Assembly: GCA_965112735.1 (NCBI GenBank)
Contig: OZ218952.1
Span: 5,022,001 to 5,086,000, forward strand
Reading direction: 5' to 3'
DNA length: 64,000 bases
From: Phaeosaccion multiseriatum
Lineage: Eukaryota > Protista > Ochrophyta, other classes
In this document: one piece after another, positions 2,725-64,000 of the stretch
How the letters are laid out: each line of letters starts with the position of its first letter
Numbering within the stretch: the first letter of the stretch is position 1
Notes under the pieces: model-generated
What the model was told of the DNA's origin: nothing
Seen by the model: only the letters and a program-made list of their open reading frames with translations
Databases searched by the model: none
Program-made: the position numbers and the translations under genes

Positions 2725-3152
2725 CTGTGAATGTGTGTACGTGTGCGTCTGTGAATGTGTGTGTGTGTGCGTGTGCGTCTGTATCTTGTTTGTTTATATG
2801 TGTGTGTAGGCGCCTTAACACATTGCCCGCGGGTCCCTCTCCGCCATGCACTGCTGTCTCCCGTGATGTGATGTGCGTGTGTTGGTGTCAGGACGTGGAG
2901 GTGAAGCGTCATGCGGTCTCGTGGATGCGGCAGACGGGCTCCTTCTCCTACACCCTCGAGGCCACGAACAGACTCAAGGCGGAGGTGCTGAGCGAGGTAG
3001 AGAGGTTGGGAGGGCACCCCAAACTTGAGCACTTAATCGAGTTACTTGACGGGCAGCTCAGCAAGCAGATGCCTGATTGGGTCTCATGGTCAAGCCCAAG
3101 TGCTGCAAGCAAAGCCAATGGCGAGGAGCGCTTTGCAGTGGATCAGATATGA
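609..3152 (+). CDS. GGPS1: Geranylgeranyl pyrophosphate synthase (type III), 7 exons
   Basis: Spliced at GT-AG: [22 protein letters not shown] '[16 protein letters not shown]', '[12 protein letters not shown]', '[16 protein letters not shown]', SARM '[11 protein letters not shown]', '[15 protein letters not shown]'. Start ATG 609 is inferred (504 is also in frame); stop TGA at 3150-3152. Confidence 0.93.
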
Positions 3153-4482
3153 GTGCTGGAGAGAGAGAGAGAGAGAGAGAGTGAGAGAGAGGGCTTTTTC
3201 GACGAATAGGAAGCTTCAGGAGCAACGGGAGAGAGAGACAGAGAGAGTGAGAGGGAGAGAAAGAAAGAGGGAGGGGGAGAGAAAGAGAGAGGGGGAGGGC
3301 CTTCTCTCTCTAGACCCCACCCCACACCGTCCTAGAGCTTCCCTTGGGAGGCGATGGCAGTCGATGGCAAGGGGTGAGGAGGTGGAAGGCAGGCCTCTAT
3401 ATGAGGCTATAGAGGGAGTGTATGGTGTGTGGGGGCTGCTGGGGCAAGTCGAGGGACATTGCTGTGACAGTGAAGCCTATTCACACTCCATTTGAACTGC
3501 CTGTACGTAGGCGTGACAAGCCCGGGGGGGTGCGGCGCTAAGCTGTGCTGCAGTTGCCGTGTGTGGTGTGTGGGGGTGTGTGGTGGGAGTGTGTGCGCGG
3601 CTGTCGACGGTGAGCGGAGGTTCAGAGTCGTGTCTCCACGAAAGCCGTCTCCAACAACTCAAGGGAGAGGGGAGCGGCGCAGTAGCAGCAGCAGTCGCTG
3701 CAGCAGGAGTAGCAGCAGCACCACCACCACCACCGCCAGCACGAGCACCAGGGGGGGGAGGAGGGAGGGGATGGGGGCGCGGCAGCTGTGGCTGGCACGG
3801 CTTCGCACAGGGCAGAATCGCAGGGCAGGCCGGCAGGGGTGGACCCTCCCCCTCGCTGCACTCGCTGCCCTCGCTGCCCTCACTGCTCTCGTGTGCCCTT
3901 CATACTCGCCTTCGGTGCAGCGGCACGGAAAGCGATTGCGATTGGCTTGTCGCTCGATGTTGGCGTTCGCTGTCTGGTTGATGTGTGCGAGGGCCAATTG
4001 CAGTCGATGGCAGTCGATGGCAGTGAATGGCAGTCGATGGCAGTCGATGGCAGCCAATGGGAGTCAATGGCAGTCAGCGACAGAGACAAGAGACACAGGC
4101 GCTCACACGTCCTCGGCGACAGCAGCAGTTGGTAATACAGCGAGGGCCTTGATAAGAGAACAGGGGACAACGCGGGGGGCACAACCGGCTGGGGGCTGGG
4201 CGGGGGGGGGGGGGGGGAGGGGGGGAGGGGGGGGCTCATGAAGCTCAGCCTCTTCCTCCCTTGTGCACACACAGACGACGACGACGTTGGCCGCCGACGG
4301 ATTCTTGATCGATCTACTTTACAGACTTAAGAAACAGAGCTACATGACTGCTCTGGACTCCCCTCACCCCTCTCCTCCCCTCGGCTTCGGCCGCTGGGCC
4401 TCCGCCCCCCTCTAATGGCACTGAACGGACCGCAGTGCATTTGTGACTGGAGGGCTTCACTAATTGCCCCCCCCCCCCCCAT

Positions 4483-4536
4483 TTAGTTGTGCCCGTTGGC
4501 CATGATGGAGTTGATGTGATCCAGGATTATACTGCG

Positions 4537-4568
<32 letters not shown>

Positions 4569-5364
4569 CACACGCACGGACACGGGAAAGGATTGGCACA
4601 GCACGGAGGAGGGGCATGGGGGGAGGCGAGGGTTAGTCAGCAGACGAGCGGTGAATGTATGGGCAGAAAGAAGCCTCCTTCCCTTTACTCGCCTCCTCCC
4701 CTCCTCCGTCCGTCCACCCTACCCTCTCCCTCCCTCCCTCCCTCCCTCCTCCCCTCCCTCCCTCCCTCCCTCCCTCCCTCCTCCCCTCCCACCCTCCTCC
4801 CCTCCCTCCTTCCGTCCCTCCGTCCCTCCGTCCCTCCGTCCCTCCCTCCTTCCCTCCATCCCTCCCTCCCTCCCTCCCTCCCTCCCGCCCTCCCTCCCTC
4901 CCTCCCTCCCTCCCTCCCTCCCTCCCTCCCTCCCTCCCTTTCTGCTCACCTGGCCATATCGGAGGCCTGCTGCGTCCTCAGAGACAACTCAAACACACTG
5001 TCGGTATCCTGGTCCCAAATGGTGAGTGACACTTGCCGCCTCGTTCCTCTCCAAGAGTGTACATCGGCATAACTGTACTGCTGCAGCAACTCCTTGCGAT
5101 CCACACCGAACATGTGCATCCCGTCGGCGCTAAAGGCGAAGAGCAGCGTGCGTGGAAGGTGACTCATAAGGTCAGGTTGGCAGCCCACTTTGACGGCGTA
5201 GAAGTAGTGGGCGCCGAACATAGGCCTCTCTCTGCACTGCTCCACAAAGAGGATCTGAGGCATTGGGTGGGGGGGTAGAGGCGGCAGCAGGTGGGTGCGT
5301 GGGTTACGAAAGGGGGGGGGGGGGAGAGGAGATAACACGCACACGCACGCACACACGCACGACG

Positions 5365-57167: not shown

Positions 57168-60137
57168 ATGGAGGCGGATGGAAGTGGGGCTGAGGTTCCC
57201 TCTGCGGGTCTGCCTTCGGCCCCAGCGCCCGCAGTCGAAGCAGCAGGAGAGGCGCCCGTCCCTCCGCCAGCCCTCCCTCTGAGCGACGAGCTCAAGGAAA
57301 TTATAGACAGATTTGCTGATCCCGTGGAAGCTGCTGCCTTTCGCGCCGCAAACGAGAAGGCCCTACCCGCAAGCATGTTCGCCACTTCGTTTGAACTCAC
57401 CACTGGGAAGGGGAGCAACGGCGACGGAGGTGAAGTAGGGAGCGGCGGGGCGACACTGGTGCTTCACCACCCCGCGTGTGAGCTGCACAGCATTGAAGGG
57501 CACCCGGAGAGCCCCAAAAGGTCTGTGGCGTGGCGTGGCGTGGCCGGGCAGAGAGCCGATAGAGCCAGCAGCAGAGATCGCAGTGCAGACACTTTCCCGC
57601 CCTGCTACAAGGGCTCCCTCTTGCTCTCCCACCTCTCCCTCTCCTGTGACTCTCGCCCCCCCCCCCCCTCCCCCTCTTCCTTACCGCTCCCTTCTTGCCC
57701 CTGCCCATTCCATAATTGACGCTGCTGCTCTTCTCTCTCAGAGTGAAGGGTATCATGCGGGCGCTGCGGAAGGCCTTCCCCGACCTGTCCCTCTGCCTGG
57801 CGCCGCAAGTGAAGGAGGAGCACCTCCGGAGAGTGCACCCGCAGCGACACATCGACTTCCTGGACAGGCTGTGCAGGTGCGGTGTGGTGCTGGAGGGGGG
57901 GAAGAGGAAGAAAAGGAGGGGGATGGGGCTCTCACCGACGCAGACAGCAGAGGGCGTATCATTCCAGCAAACAGGGTGGTGGTCCAGCGCGCCGGGTCTG
58001 GAGTATGCAGTCCATGCTTTGTGCTACAGTCAGTAATGCTGTGCGGCCTGTACCAGAAAAGCCCCCACACGCTCTCCTTTATCTCACATCTGTCATGTGC
58101 CGCCCTCCCCAGCCAAGCGGAGCAGCAGGCCAATCTCAGACCACGGCTCAAGCCCTGGGAGCTCGTGCAAGCCATCGATGACGACACCAACATCATGCCC
58201 TTCAGCAGGGAGGCCATCTCCAGGGCGGCGGGTGCCGTGGTGCACGCCGTTGACTGCGTCTTCAAGGGGACGCCCTCTCACTTCCCGCCCTCTCCTTCCG
58301 CGGCCGCTGCTGCTGAAGGAGACGCCGCTGCTGTATCACCAATTGCTGTGCCTGCTGCACGCAACGCGTTCTGCTGCACCCGCCCCCCGGGGCACCACGC
58401 CTCTCAGGCCAGGGCCATGGGCTTCTGCTTCGTCAACAACGCCGCAGTGGGGGCCCTACACGCCCTCGACAAGTACCTGGGGGGCGTGGACAAGGGAGAG
58501 GGCGTGAACCAGCAGGGCACACCCGCCGCGGGGGGGGAGGAGGACCGCTCAAGCATGACCACCAGCTTGAATGTCGGTGACCCCGACGCCAATGTCGATA
58601 ATCCCGATGCCAAAGGTCGAGTGGCGGTGATCGACATTGATGTCCACCACGGTAACGGCTCGCAGGACATTTTTGCCGATGTGCCCCGCGTTTTCTACGG
58701 CTCGACTCATCAGGGGCACGGCTTCTACCCGGGCTCCGGCTGGGGCGATGAGACAGCTTCTAACGTGAGTGCGGGAGTGGGTGGGTGGGTGCGTGAGTGG
58801 GTGGGTGGGTGCGTGAGTGAGTGGGTGCGTGAGTGGGTGCGTGAGATGGAGGATATCTCGCTCTTGTGAAGGGAGCGCTCTCGGACGACAGTGGGACGAC
58901 ATTCACGGCTGTAGTGCAAGGGGACACTGAATCTGACCCTGACCCTGACCCTGACCCTGGTCCTCCCTCCCTCCCTGCCTCCGTCCCTCCCTTCCCCTCG
59001 GCTTCTCCTCGTCCACAGAACTCGTTGTGTAACGTTGAGCTGCGCGACGGTGACGGCAGTGCCGCCTTCCGCAAGGCCTACACTGAGCACGTGTTCCCTG
59101 CCCTCAGGGCCTTCAAGCCGCACCTTATCATCATCAGTGCGGGCTTCGACGCGCACAGCGAAGACCCTCTCGTAAGTGCAGGCAGTGTAGTGGGATGGAT
59201 GGATGGATGGAGGTATGGATAGCAATGTATGGCAGTGTAGTGGGATGGATGGATGGAGGTGTGGATGGCAATGTATGGCAGGGTAGTGGAATGGATGGAT
59301 GGAGGTATGGATGGCAATGTATGGCAGTGTAGTGGGATGGATGGATGGAGGTATGGATGGCAATGTATGGCAGTGTAGTGGGATGGATGGATGGAGGTAT
59401 GGATGGCAATGTATGGCAGTGTAGTGGGATGGATGGATGGAGGTCTGGATGGCAATGTATGGCTGTACGTAGACGGGTGGATGGCAGCATGGGATGGGTA
59501 GACTGGTGGATGGATGGATGGATGGCAATCTATGGCAATCTATCCTAGCCCTTCGACTTTCCTCTCGTTCTAATCGACTGCCATCCCATCCACTGCCATC
59601 CCCTCCACTCCGCTGCCATCCCATCCACTGCCATCCCCTCCCATCCTACAGGCGGGCATACAGCTGCACGCAGACGACTTCCGCTGGGTCACACAGGGGC
59701 TTTGCCTCATCGCGCAGGAACAGGAGCAGTGCGCAGGGCGAGTGGTTTCGGTGCTTGAGGGCGGGTACCACATCGCGGCCATCAGCGCCTCGGCCACGGC
59801 ACATGTGGACGTGCTAAGAGCGGCGTCGAGAGGACAGCTCGAGGACATGATTCAGAAGGATGAGGCCAGAGAGGCGGAGATCGAGGCGGAGCGGGCGGTA
59901 GCGGTGGAGGTAGCGGGAGGAGGAGGAGGGGGAGGAGGAGGAGGAGGAGGAGGAGGAGAGGGTGTGACGACGGGAGTAGAAGCAGCAGCAGCACCAGTAG
60001 CAGAAACAGCACCAGGGGCAGGCGGAGCAGCAGGAGTTGGTGATACAGCAGAAGGCCAATTGGACGGCTTGGTTAAACAGCTGAGTTTGGAGGAGAAGGA
60101 AGAAAGAAGCACGGAGGAACCGCCAGCCCCTCCCTAA
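57168..60137 (+). CDS. Zn-dependent deacetylase (class II HDAC / AcuC-AphA-like), 5 exons
   Basis: [51 protein letters not shown] and VLEGGY motifs are all intact. Confidence 0.93.
59181..59465. repeat. 46-bp intronic minisatellite (GGCAGTGTAGTGGGATGGATGGATGGAGGTATGGATGGCAATGTAT), about 6 copies
   Basis: Starts just after the donor at 59172 in the last deacetylase intron. Confidence 0.9.
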
Positions 60138-60668
60138 TGGGCAGCGAAGGGGAAGGGGAAGGAGGAGGAAGAGGAGGATGAGAAGGGCGTATTTCCCCAC
60201 CAGACACCGAATTCTTTGATTCAATCGTACCGGGTTCTTTGATAGAATTATGGTTGGGCTGGCCCCGCCCGATCCCCTCCCCTTGTGATTCTCCAAAAAT
60301 TCCATCATTTAGTCATGGTGCTTCGTTTGGAGCTCTACTCTTACTCTTCTACCCATCGCGCGCTGAAAGGCCCCCCACCTCCTCCCCCCTCCCTTCAACA
60401 CTCTGTCTAAGCAACACGCAGCCTCTGGCCGACAGGAGCGGACAGGGGCGGACAGGGGCGGGCCTCTTGACAGGGGCGGACCGGCGAGTGGGCAAGTGGG
60501 CCTCTTCTCTGCCCTACAGCCCGCCTCCTGATACCCATATACCCATATACCCATGTGCTCTGGCGCACAGTGCTTTCCTCCTCCCCTCGTTGTCAGGCGT
60601 CAGGAGTCAGGAATCAGAGGTGTGAGGAGCCAGGTGCCAGGAATCAGAGGTGCCAGGAGCCTCAGTCT

Positions 60669-63600
60669 TCAGTCGTCCCTAAGCTTGAGCAGGAGCCTGC
60701 TCGAGAGCTCCGTCCCAACCATCCCCTCGTATTCCGTCAGCAAGGGGGCGAGGAAACGGCGGCTGTCGGCGGTGAGGTGCCGAAGGCTCAGTGGGGCATG
60801 TTGGCCAAGCACGAGCGGGATGGCGTTCAAATCCGCCCCCGACCCCTCCTCCCCCTCCTCCCCCTCCTTCTCCTTCCTCTCCTCCTCTGCCCTCCTCTCG
60901 GCCTTGGTCTCCGCCTCCCCCTCCTTCTGCCCTTGACGTAAGCAATCGGAGAGCACCACGTACTTGCTCGCTTTGAGTGCCTCTTGACAGGCGGAGAGTG
61001 GCACCCACTCGAGCCTTCTTGGGCACAGCAGCGAGGAGGGGCGGTACTCTCCTTTGTAACGCATCTTGACGCAGTCCGGGATGAAGTAACCCATCATGTA
61101 GTATCGAAGCTCACTCTCACACTCACTCTCACACCCACTCTTCGACTGTGACTCTGGTCCCGACTTTGAGGACTCCTCATGCCCGCCACTGCTCTGCAAA
61201 TCCTGCTGACTGCTCTGATGACGCGCCAGGTCGGCCTTGACCCAAGCAATCTCCTCCAGCGCAGTGAGCTTGCCCAGCACGAGGTCCCGATAGGCGGGGT
61301 CGTAGAAGCAGTACACGGAGCTCAGACAGCGTGGCAGTACGTCCACTACCCCCACCGCCACTAGGCGCCCGTCTAGGCGGTAGAGCTGGTGGTAACTCCC
61401 ATAGGGTACAGGGCCGTCCCCGTCTCTGTCTGTGTCCCCGTGTGTGTGCTGCCCACTGCCGTCTCCTCCTCCAGGGATGGATGAGGGCTTTTGGTCCTCC
61501 CCTCCTCCAGCACCGACGCCAACACCAGCACCAGCACCAGCACCAGCACCAGCACCAGCAGTATCGCCGGCAACACCCCCAGAGCCACCGTCAGGCCGCT
61601 CCCCCCCCCCGGCTCTCGTTGCTCTCGTTGCTCTCGTTGCTCTCGTTGCTCTCGTTGCTCTCGTTGCTCTCCGCTTCTCACGGACGAGGGGGCTGTCCAC
61701 GAGGAATCGCTCGAACTGCTTGCGATTCACATCCCCCGGGGGGTCGCCGTGTACGCTCACCTGCGCGGCAGCAAGCAAGGCAAGAAGCAAGCAAGCAAGC
61801 AAGCAAGCAAGCACGCAAGCAAGCAAGCAAGCAAGCAACAAGTCAGGGCGTCCGTTGTCCGGCGACGGGGTGTGAGCAAAGGACAAAGGGCAAAGAGCAA
61901 AGGACAGAGAACAAACGAGCAAAGAGACGCAAGGAGGCGGCCAGAGCCACTGAGACAGGAGCCACTGGGACAAGAGTTATCGGTGCTCTGACCTGGCTCT
62001 TGCTAGTCAGTCCTGTCACCAAGTACCTACTAGTCCTAACCTCGTCCTGTTACCTGGTATTTCTTGTACAGTGCAAACACCTCGGCCGTGTATCTGGCGG
62101 GCACCGTGGTGATGGAGAATGTGGGCTTGCGGTGCTTGGCCTGTTTGGGTATCTGCTCGGGCATTTGCTTGGGCAGCGGCGGAGGAGACACCGCCATCGC
62201 CGCCGGAGAGGCAATTTGAGCTTCAGTTTGAGCCTCAGTCGCACCCTCTTCTCCCTCGTGTGCCGTGGCGAGGGGCGGCGGTAGAGACGCATCTCCCCCT
62301 CTGTCCTGCGGCCCTTCGCCTGAACTCCCTCCACCACCACCCACTTGACTTGCCGCAGCACCGCCCAACCCCCCCCCTGCCGTCGCTATTGTCAATGCTT
62401 CTAGCGTATGTCCTGCGCCCTCCTCGTCGCTGACCCTCATGGCCGTCGCCGGATCCCGTCCCCCCTCGGAGAGCTCCCCCCCGGGGCGCAGCTGGAAGTT
62501 GAGGAAGCCGTTGTCCGCCGCCGTTACGCTGCGCAGCCCCGACGAGAGCAGGGCCGAGGGAGACGTCAGAGAGGCCAGCAACAAGTGGGCGACGTCCACC
62601 GGCCGGAGCACCACATGCTGTTTCCCGCCCTTGCCGCCTTTGCCGCCTTTGCCCTTCCTATTCCCACCTTCGTCTCCGGTTCCGCCATCCCCTCCTCCCC
62701 CCCCCCCCCTCCTCCTCCTCCGCCTCCTCCTCCTCCTTTCCCTGCTGCCGCTGCTGCCCTCTTATTAACCATGGCTGCCAGCTTCATGGCGATGGCCGTG
62801 CTGTAATCCATCACGGGCGCCAGTTGTGACTCCGCGACCCCCCCGCCGGCCCTGATCTTCTGCTTGCCCCGCAGAAGAGAGCTCGGTTTGACCGCCCCCG
62901 CCTTGCCCACCTCCCCTAGGTCCTCTAGCGACACCCCAGGAAGCTTCCCTGCATCCACCACCTCCCACACCGCCTGCCGGACAGCGGCCTCCAGCCTCCG
63001 ACACACCGCGGCCCGCTGTATCACCAACTGCTGCTGCTGCTGTTGACCTGTGGCATCCTTCTGCCCCACCTTCTGTTCTGCCCCCGTCTCCCTCCGATTC
63101 GATGCGTGGGAAGCCTCGCAGGCCCCGTTCGGAGACCGTTCCGCTGATCCTTGTTCCTTGTGTGTCCCCCCCGCGCCTCCCGCCCGCTGTCGCTTCGGCT
63201 TCTTAGAGGGGCCGACCCGCATCCTGCTCTTCTGCCTCTCTGCCTCAACTTCAGCCTCCGTGTAATCGTGGGTCTCCTTATCAGTCTCCTTCTTAGTCTC
63301 CATCTCTGCGCCCCCCTCCTCCCCCTCCTCCAACATACCCTCCAGGCCCCCCTCCAGGCCCCCCTCCAGCAGTCTGCGCAGCTTGCCTTTGACCCTGCGC
63401 TGCTGCTTGTCGGGTGAGAAGTGAGTCACGTCGAGGCGGATGGTGTACTGGGGGCAGCACGTCTGCCGGACAGAGGCAGAGAGGGGGGGGGGTTGGCGAG
63501 AGTAAGAGTCTGCTTCGCGTTCCAGTTTGCCTGTGGTGGGCGCAAATGCAAGGAACGGCCCAGGCTGCGGTACAGTGGCCGACTGATGGCACAGGAGGGA

Positions 63601-63863
63601 GTAAATTGTGAGGGATGAAGCGCACGGGTGAAGTATTGTCTGCACATGACTGTGCAGGACGCTGCAGGACAGGAGCAACAGTGGAGCAGCAGCGGATCAA
63701 CAGCGTAGCAGCAACAGCAGTACCTTGTCCATGATGGGCTTGTAGAGGAAGGTCCCGCTCCTCCTCCAGCCCCGCTCCAGCAGCAGTTGGTAATCCGTCG
63801 CCGTCAAGCGCTCCGCCATCATGCCGTACGACAGGGAGGTCTTCGCCGCGGCCTTGCAGTAGC
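60669..63863 (-). CDS. ATE1: Arginyl-tRNA--protein transferase 1; the 5' exon lies beyond the window
   Basis: GYCK, 'DYQLLLERGWRRSGTFLYKP', 'TCCPQYTIRLD', 'LYKKYQVSVHGD', 'YGSYHQLYRLDGRLVAVGVVDVLPRCLSSVYCFYDP', 'YYMMGYFIPDCVKMRYKGEYRPSSLLCP'. One frameshift in a C13 run (62697-62709). Confidence 0.93.
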
Positions 63864-64000
63864 CTGGGGAGCCGCACAAGGGCGCGATTGGCTGGGGGTT
63901 AGACAGTAGACTCGTTCTGGGAAATGGGTCCCCACGGAACATGGCCTTTTTTGCACACCGCTGGGCGGCGCTAATCCGACGAAAGCTGGGGATGAGGGAA

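Follow-up and report, generated by a model that had tools for sequence, protein, structure and literature searches.

An inserted domain related to the N-terminal domain of arginyl-tRNA synthetase in the arginyltransferase ATE1 of the alga Phaeosaccion multiseriatum

The stretch of DNA analysed here, referred to as the window, comprises 64,000 nucleotides of the ochrophyte alga Phaeosaccion multiseriatum (assembly GCA_965112735.1, contig OZ218952.1, positions 5,022,001 to 5,086,000). Reading of both strands from position 60500 to 64000 of the window identified a gene encoding arginyl-tRNA–protein transferase (ATE1) on the minus strand, which extends from ATG to stop over positions 60669–63942. 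The assignment is based on Pfam matches to both parts of the enzyme, ATE_N and ATE_C, on GT-AG splice junctions, and on homologues. Between ATE_N and ATE_C, the gene encodes a segment that resembles Add-1, the approximately 100-residue N-terminal domain of arginyl-tRNA synthetase (ArgRS) that reads the D-loop in tRNA-Arg.

The ATE1 gene and its interrupted inserted domain

The ATE1 gene consists of three exons, and its predicted product is approximately 906 residues long if one base bridges a frame change inside exon 2. Exon 1 (63724–63942) opens with the ATG that comes first behind an in-frame stop. It encodes the protein N-terminus together with the beginning of ATE_N (...GYCK...GWRRSGTFLYKPIMDK) and ends at the donor AAG/GTACTG. 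It is followed by intron 1 (63463–63723, GT..AG), which is 261 nucleotides long. Exon 2 (62054–63462) opens with TCCPQYTIRL and closes with LYKKYQ at the donor CAG/GTAACA; its translation and Pfam matches show that it runs from the end of ATE_N through the following helix and the Add-1-like domain to the first residues of ATE_C (VPARYTAEVFALYKKYQ). Intron 2 (61761–62053) spans 293 nucleotides from CAG/GTAACA to CGCAG/G, and much of it is occupied by an (AGCA)n microsatellite of 18.5 copies (61770–61842). Exon 3 (60669–61760) contains 364 codons for the remaining part of ATE_C, the C-terminal tail, and the stop. The splice junctions of both introns are GT-AG with compatible phases.

The match to ATE_N (PF04376) is split between exon 1 (E 3e-11, profile positions 4–47) and exon 2 (E 1.3e-6, profile positions 47–72), and both matches exceed the cut-off of 27 bits. 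ATE_C (PF04377), the catalytic part with the GNAT fold, is matched with 113.5 bits (E 1.2e-32) over positions 5–122 of the 122-position profile, corresponding to protein residues 66–317. The N-terminal cysteine motifs of ATE1 are present as LCGSPGYCK, with C..C before the GWRRSG box, and as TCCPQYTIRL, which corresponds to CC-P-x-Y-T-I-R. The word search gave as best homologues proteins annotated as ATE1 from stramenopile algae (Tribonema, brown algae, and Heterosigma) and from plants; the annotated gene model of the window itself was not returned by the word-based protein searches. A tree built on ATE_C places exon 3 within the stramenopile ATE1 group with a Shimodaira–Hasegawa-like approximate likelihood ratio test (SH-aLRT) support of 97. 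Judged by its sequence, the locus is an ordinary ATE1 gene from a stramenopile alga with GC-rich DNA, and its product is predicted to transfer arginine from Arg-tRNA-Arg to Asp, Glu, or oxidized Cys at protein N-termini. The Add-1-like domain is not part of a neighbouring gene, because the same exon holds it together with portions of both ATE_N and ATE_C.

The catalytic part of the protein is broken up by in-frame low-complexity runs made of repeats in exon 3. At 61507–61671, on the minus strand, 6.7 copies of the perfect nine-nucleotide repeat GCTCTCGTT encode (RAT)n, and nine copies of the six-nucleotide repeat CCAGCA encode (GA)n. Approximately 110 low-complexity residues are contained in the part of ATE_C encoded by exon 3, and the Pfam match nevertheless stays unbroken.

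The peptides by which the original prediction described the inserted domain were all found where it had placed them, by minus-strand translation and peptide look-up, and they lie in two different frames. RRLEAAVRQAV (63000–62968) and VMDYSTAIAMKLAAMV (62814–62767) are read in the frame with codon starts at 0 mod 3, and LRPVDVAHLLLASL (62608–62567) and LRSVTAADNGFLNFQL (62536–62489) in the frame with codon starts at 1 mod 3. The N-terminal half of the domain (62767–63012, minus strand), delimited by its match to a profile of ATE1 inserts, comprises helix 1 (AAVCRRLEAAVRQAVWEVV), a strand region, and helix 2 (MDYSTAIAMKLAAMV). It aligns to residues 206–278 of P0074, which is the nearest relative with a contiguous copy. 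The C-terminal half (62489–62614, minus strand), delimited in the same manner, comprises helix 3 (RPVDVAHLLLASL) and the β-hairpin LRSVTAADNGFLNFQL.

The two halves are separated by a low-complexity Gly/Lys linker (62615–62766, minus strand), recognized by translation and repeat analysis, which forms the loop between helices 2 and 3. The linker is built from the nine-nucleotide repeat GGCGGCAAA (62621–62653), which encodes GGK, and from a run of GGA-type triplets (62691–62737) around a homopolymer of 13 bases (62697–62709, by sequence count), C on the plus strand and G on the coding strand. The repeat expansion lengthened a surface loop of the Add-1-like domain, and in the alignment other ATE1s carry unrelated, variable Lys-rich inserts in the same loop.

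Reading through both halves requires a frame change between positions 62742 and 62615, which may be provided by one extra base or by an intron with a length of 2 mod 3. The original prediction had placed a frameshift in the run of C. The homopolymer indeed contains exactly 13 bases, and one base added to it would restore the frame; however, this is not the sole correction, since GT-AG introns would have the same effect. Enumeration of GT/GC-AG introns that restore the frame yielded only two GT donors, of which one defines an intron of 50 nucleotides (62667–62618) and the other, at 62769, introns of 116–152 nucleotides. None of these candidate introns has a pyrimidine tract, none is near the 261–293 nucleotides of the other introns of the gene, and none is similar to them in composition. 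All the options that restore the frame retain both halves of the domain in one protein. An exact-word scan of metagenome contigs found no independent DNA copy of the sequence flanking the linker.

As assembled, frame 0 meets a stop at 62568–62566. This stop, together with the position of the homopolymer in a slippage-prone microsatellite, could be taken to indicate that the gene is truly frameshifted in this alga and is either a pseudogene or encodes a product truncated after the N-terminal half of the domain. Such a defect is improbable: the second frame is open downstream and conserved, including the motif residues of the C-terminal half, the start of ATE_C, the splice junctions, and the 364 codons of exon 3. 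Moreover, a single-base error is typical of assemblies in a homopolymer of 13 bases, and two GT-AG options restore the frame. The frame change is most likely a one-base assembly error in the homopolymer or a short intron. With either cause the window gene would be intact, which is very probable, and the Add-1-like domain is probably intact in the protein of this alga.

An exact copy (63016–63030, minus strand) of the dispersed 15-nucleotide word CAGTTGGTGATACAG lies within a run of CAG in exon 2, where it encodes QQLVIQ and immediately precedes helix 1 of the Add-1-like domain. A word count identified seven copies of CAGTTGGTGATACAG in the window with at most one mismatch, whereas none is expected by chance; the other copies are at 4126, 40071, 51313, 56202, 58331, and 60034. 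QQLVIQ is read in frame at five of these places.

Homology of the insert to the N-terminal domain of ArgRS

The profile used to recognize the insert was built from 23 ATE1 inserts of other organisms, with the window sequence excluded. The two halves from the window were searched separately, and tests that require a contiguous domain were performed on natural orthologues. When all 1252 six-frame, stop-to-stop pieces of the window were scanned with the insert profile, the two halves were the best two matches and were collinear on the profile. The C-terminal half matched profile positions 92–138 with an E of 1.7e-6 and the N-terminal half positions 4–84 with an E of 9.4e-4, whereas the next best piece had an E of 0.61. 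Because both halves top the window-wide scan and are collinear, their resemblance to the insert family is not due to chance. The Pfam profile of the ArgRS domain, PF03485 (Arg_tRNA_synt_N), has 85 positions and a gathering cut-off of 21.5 bits. It was the sole family reported for the C-terminal half alone, with 13.4 bits and an E of 0.12 over profile positions 52–85. A Pfam search of the whole open reading frames (ORFs) of the window returned no match to PF03485, because the domain is split between two frames.

The word search with the exon encoding ATE_C returned 77 ATE1 proteins, 29 of which carry the motif [G/P]-[F/H/Y/W]-[I/L/V/M]-N-[F/I/L/V]. In full-length proteins, the motif is positioned between ATE_N and ATE_C. 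Its carriers include land plants, Volvox, Micractinium, three red algae, Laminaria, Heterosigma, and many environmental eukaryotes. P0074 reads ...PRLEAALREAVRAIL...LGDYSSPTALALTAQLRKR...PALAQRLLIHLLP...LRSIKAAPNGFLNFFL in this region and contains ATE_N, the insert, and ATE_C in one uninterrupted ORF of a 345-kilobase metagenome contig. The source of P0074 is ENA ERZ25039514 contig_86584 (L001), positions 3001–4896, an intron-poor eukaryotic contig with an ORF call in the prokaryotic style. The last 120 residues of P0074 resemble out-of-frame read-through past the middle of ATE_C, so that an intron or a frameshift has probably cut its gene model short.

The 23 aligned inserts share a common plan, in which an initial helix is followed by the strand x-V-K-V-F-P-P-R, a loop, and a second helix that begins with S-N. 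A variable loop then leads to the helix x-x-I-A-E-x-L and to a hairpin that ends in G-aromatic-x-N-F. PF03485 matches 15 of the 23 isolated inserts at an E of 10 or lower. Several contiguous orthologues scored above the gathering cut-off of this profile. The insert of P0074 reached 29.7 bits (E 1e-6) when isolated and 24.7 bits within the whole protein; P0100 reached 33.4 bits (E 6.9e-8) over positions 2–84 of the 85-position profile; P0083 reached 25.4 bits; and the ATE1 of Marchantia paleacea reached 21.7 bits. Precomputed annotation already assigns PF03485 to two ATE1s.

Searches of the PDB with profiles of the inserts led to the same family. Eight of the ten matches to the 23-sequence profile were ArgRS. 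The top nine matches to a profile of 54 sequences were all ArgRS, with the human cytoplasmic enzyme first and a best E of 3.1e-4. The matches were always to ArgRS residues ~30–100.

The fold of the insert was predicted for two orthologues. The AlphaFold model of residues 195–329 of P0074 has a mean predicted local distance difference test (pLDDT) score of 85 and a predicted template modelling (pTM) score of 0.80. In a Foldseek search, the top 19 matches to this model were all ArgRS. VIA-align gave Z-scores of 11.8–7.4 to 15 ArgRS entries from bacteria, archaea, and eukaryotes, whereas the next fold had a Z-score of 4.2. The alignments cover ArgRS chain residues ~1–100 with root-mean-square deviations of 2.0–4.2 Å over 86–100 residues. 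The model of the insert from Arabidopsis ATE1 (P0110, residues 148–274) has a pLDDT of 87. In an exhaustive comparison with 48,161 representative chains, performed without Foldseek, its top six matches were all N-terminal domains of ArgRS (Z-scores 9.9–7.6), and the next match had a Z-score of 6.3. Both models have the Add-1 fold of an N-terminal helix, an antiparallel sheet, two helices, and a C-terminal β-hairpin, and they match the ArgRS domains well above other folds. The comparable insert that the original prediction mentioned for plant ATE1s is thus borne out by the fold of the Arabidopsis domain. No solved ATE1 structure, from yeast or human, was among the fold matches of the insert models, which is consistent with the absence of the module from the yeast and human enzymes.

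The surroundings of the insert are rich in Gly, Ala, and Lys repeats, and together with the lack of a PF03485 match in whole ORFs this might suggest that short motifs match by chance where the sequence is of low complexity. However, several orthologues score above the curated Pfam cut-off, the structural matches span the whole domain with Z-scores of 10–12 against a background of 4–6, and conservation of the domain spans land plants, red algae, and stramenopiles. These results rule out chance similarity for all practical purposes. The host protein is not a class I synthetase, as the domain lies between ATE_N and ATE_C and within one exon; this placement does not count against the homology of the domain itself. 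The ATE1 insert is almost certainly homologous to the N-terminal Add-1 domain of ArgRS (PF03485), since three independent lines of evidence agree, namely Pfam matches, profile searches against the PDB, and predicted structures. The resemblance recognized in the original prediction is upheld both by these orthologues and by the rank of the two halves within the window.

Distribution among ATE1 proteins and the neighbouring reading frame

The distribution of the domain was surveyed in 175 ATE1-family proteins, of which 115 contain both landmarks that flank the insertion site. The insert profile matches 95 of the 175 proteins with an E below 1e-3. Among the 115 ATE1s with both landmarks, 78 carry the domain and have 242–489 residues between the landmarks, whereas 37 lack it and have 71–306 residues. 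The architecture is widespread, as the original prediction had supposed it might be. Carriers include angiosperms, a lycophyte, a liverwort, green, red, and brown algae, Chrysoparadoxa, Heterosigma, and many environmental eukaryotes. Among the ATE1s without the domain are those of fungi, flukes, and an ochromonad, as well as many short environmental ones.

The presence and absence of the domain require at least four changes on a quick tree of ATE_C from which the insert columns were excluded. The tree cannot separate gain from loss, because it is unrooted and its deep branches are weak. The stramenopile part of the tree, in the region of P0073, P0100, P0071, and P0074, includes a strongly supported clade of 28 short ATE1s, one of them from an ochromonad. 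Twenty-four members of the clade were confirmed to be without the domain, and the remaining four are missing the middle region. The clade adjoins forms that bear the domain, which suggests repeated loss or gene replacement.

The strand opposite to ATE1 contains an ORF at 59742–60137 (plus strand), which encodes a C-terminal protein part with an LEGGY motif followed by a poly-Gly run. The LEGGY motif is presumably that typical of proteins from the histone-deacetylase and acetoin-utilisation family.

A putative reader of the tRNA-Arg D-loop

The only invariant positions in 53 non-redundant ATE1 domains are the G and N of the hairpin motif G-[H/F/Y/W]-x-N-[F/I/L]. The residue after the invariant G is always aromatic, and A or T stands four positions ahead of it in ~80% of the domains. 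The counterpart in the window is NGFLNF (62495–62512, minus strand), which motif comparison equates with the A20-pocket motif G81-F82-I83-N84 of Escherichia coli ArgRS. It is part of A-D-N-G-F-L-N-F (62518–62495), in which the Ala four positions before the Phe is the equivalent of E. coli A78, so that the hairpin of the window has the equivalents of A78, F82, and N84. In E. coli ArgRS, F82 stacks on A20 of tRNA-Arg, N84 is central to recognition, and the small A78 leaves room for the adenine (PMC8975779). The A20 pocket of Add1 has been defined by the motif Tyr/Phe-Asn/Gln (PMC3956977). No tRNA gene was found in the window, and hence no position 20 of tRNA-Arg can be read there.

The domain in ATE1 shares with ArgRS Add-1 the fold (Z-scores of up to 11.8), the Pfam profile, and the hairpin motif of a small residue followed by G-aromatic-x-N, which in ArgRS stacks on and hydrogen-bonds A20 of tRNA-Arg (PMC3956977, PMC8975779). 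By contrast, the host of the ATE1 copy is an aminoacyl-transferase with a GNAT fold, which carries the domain internally, and not a class I synthetase that begins with it. The ATE1 copies also have a degenerate GDYQ motif and long, lineage-specific low-complexity inserts in their loops, and their tRNA binding is putative.

Fungal ATE1s from Saccharomyces cerevisiae and Kluyveromyces lactis (PMC10115844, PMC9351520) have the same core of ATE_N and GNAT-fold ATE_C, the CC-P-x-Y-T-I-R motif, and the helix for the groove of the acceptor stem; however, their inter-domain segment is short and lacks an Add-1 module, and short ATE1s have 71–146 residues between the landmarks. In yeast ATE1, the helix enters the groove of the acceptor stem, and the acceptor arm is the sole contact (PMC10115844). 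Human ATE1 has an "alpha-C loop" (residues ~191–268; PMC11283454) at the same topological place, in the long variable loop between ATE_N and ATE_C. The human loop forms a second contact with the tRNA, to its D- and T-arms, beyond that with the acceptor stem, and removal of the loop helix weakens tRNA binding (PMC11283454). Unlike the Add-1-like module, it consists of one helix within a disordered loop. Its conservation extends from fly to human, and neither its sequence nor its fold is related to Add-1. Arabidopsis ATE1 and ATE2 and other plant ATEs are orthologous enzymes with the same inserted domain, and they have been described as ATE_N and ATE_C with a "variable inter-domain" region (PMC5452128). 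The copy in the window is nearer to the synthetase consensus (DY...NGFLNF) than the plant domains but is broken by the repeat linker.

These comparisons suggest how the module might function. Add-1 is inserted in a long variable loop, flanked on one side by the helix of ATE_N that binds the acceptor stem and comes after CC-P-x-Y-T-I-R, and on the other by the first strand of ATE_C. As the GNAT core of ATE1 held the arginylated CCA end, the module could dock on the elbow of the tRNA and read nucleotide 20 of the D-loop. The nucleotide read would be A20, an identity mark unique to tRNA-Arg, and the outcome would be added affinity and specificity for this tRNA. In plants and algae, the module would correspond to the helix, unrelated to it, with which the loop of human ATE1 touches the D- and T-arms. 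The loop that holds Add-1 would be the same as the tRNA-binding loop of human ATE1, as judged from the residue numbers of the human protein (PMC11283454) and the Pfam boundaries. The geometry is plausible, because this loop of human ATE1 reaches the elbow of the D- and T-arms, near nucleotide 20, and the layout mirrors that of ArgRS.

The complete explanation, that an Add-1 domain inserted in ATE1 reads the D-loop in tRNA-Arg, has an estimated probability of about 0.65. The chance that the module gives ATE1 extra affinity and specificity for tRNA-Arg via the D-loop is even or somewhat better, and whether plant and algal ATE1s read A20 with the module derived from ArgRS, reusing a tRNA identity reader outside translation, is evenly balanced. 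The original prediction proposed that ATE1 had captured the tRNA reader of the synthetase in order to select or channel its substrate. The homology to the synthetase domain is supported by Pfam, profiles, and structures. Channelling, in which ATE1 and ArgRS would bind the tRNA simultaneously, seems unlikely, because the two enzymes would claim the same surface of the tRNA; hand-over or competition is more likely.

Several observations weigh against this explanation. The frame change splits the domain copy of the window, neither half reaches the Pfam cut-off, and the N-terminal half is without any match to PF03485. Arabidopsis ATE1 is not detected by PF03485 either, the angiosperm inserts being too diverged for Pfam. 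The other side of the pocket, formed by the GDYQ signature of A20-dependent, cytosolic-type synthetases (F36 and Q40), is only partly kept: the window reads MDYS, P0074 reads GDYS, and P0100 reads GDYA. Most ATE1s are reduced to x-T/S-S-N at this position. The Gln that bonds A20 (E. coli Q40) is not retained. Yeast ArgRS keeps the motif, yet mutation of the equivalent residues has no kinetic effect, and cytosolic tRNA-Arg of some stramenopiles has C20 or U20 (PMC8975779). In yeast and mouse systems, arginylation needs no more of the tRNA than a minihelix of the acceptor arm (PMC10115844), and ATE1s without the domain work. Because of these last two points, the domain is an accessory that is not essential to the chemistry.

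Some of the same observations would be explained if the Add-1-derived domain no longer read position 20 and served as a generic clamp on the tRNA elbow, a scaffold, or a protein–protein or regulatory module, for example for N-degron substrates or partners. The poor conservation of the GDYQ half of the pocket in ATE1 inserts, the mutation in yeast ArgRS that leaves the kinetics unchanged, and the fungal and animal ATE1s that manage without the module are in line with such a role. However, the sole residues that are invariant across the 53 sequences lie in the hairpin of the pocket, which would be unexpected if the fold alone mattered, and the insertion site is the loop that reaches the elbow of the D- and T-arms in human ATE1. 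A domain that no longer reads position 20 is rather unlikely. If the module does read A20, ATE1 would compete with ArgRS for one site on the tRNA and co-evolve with position 20. Loss or relaxation of the domain would then be expected where cytosolic tRNA-Arg lacks A20, as in fungi and perhaps diatoms.

No account of a synthetase-like domain in ATE1 was found in open-access papers and preprints, including those on the structures of yeast, K. lactis, and human ATE1 and a review of plant ATEs. A known enzyme and a known domain are apparently joined here in a combination that has not been described before and that has been overlooked in databases. It is visible there because automated Pfam annotation flags the domain in a minority of ATE1 sequences. 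Add-1 has been called unique to ArgRS among synthetases (PMC3956977), and the insert in ATE1 would be an example of an identity-reading module of a synthetase that is reused by another tRNA-dependent enzyme. Lineage-specific changes at position 20 of tRNA-Arg (PMC8975779) offer a natural test of co-evolution. The additional tRNA contact of human ATE1 has been attributed to "higher organisms" and said to be missing from Arabidopsis (PMC11283454); however, at the place of the human loop, a different, folded module derived from a synthetase is present in land plants, in green and red algae, and in many stramenopiles. ATE1 draws its Arg-tRNA-Arg from the translation pool. The plant Arg/N-degron pathway governs the sensing of oxygen and nitric oxide, germination, and flooding tolerance, and the Add-1-like module offers a concrete mechanism by which ATE1 may choose its tRNA in this pathway.

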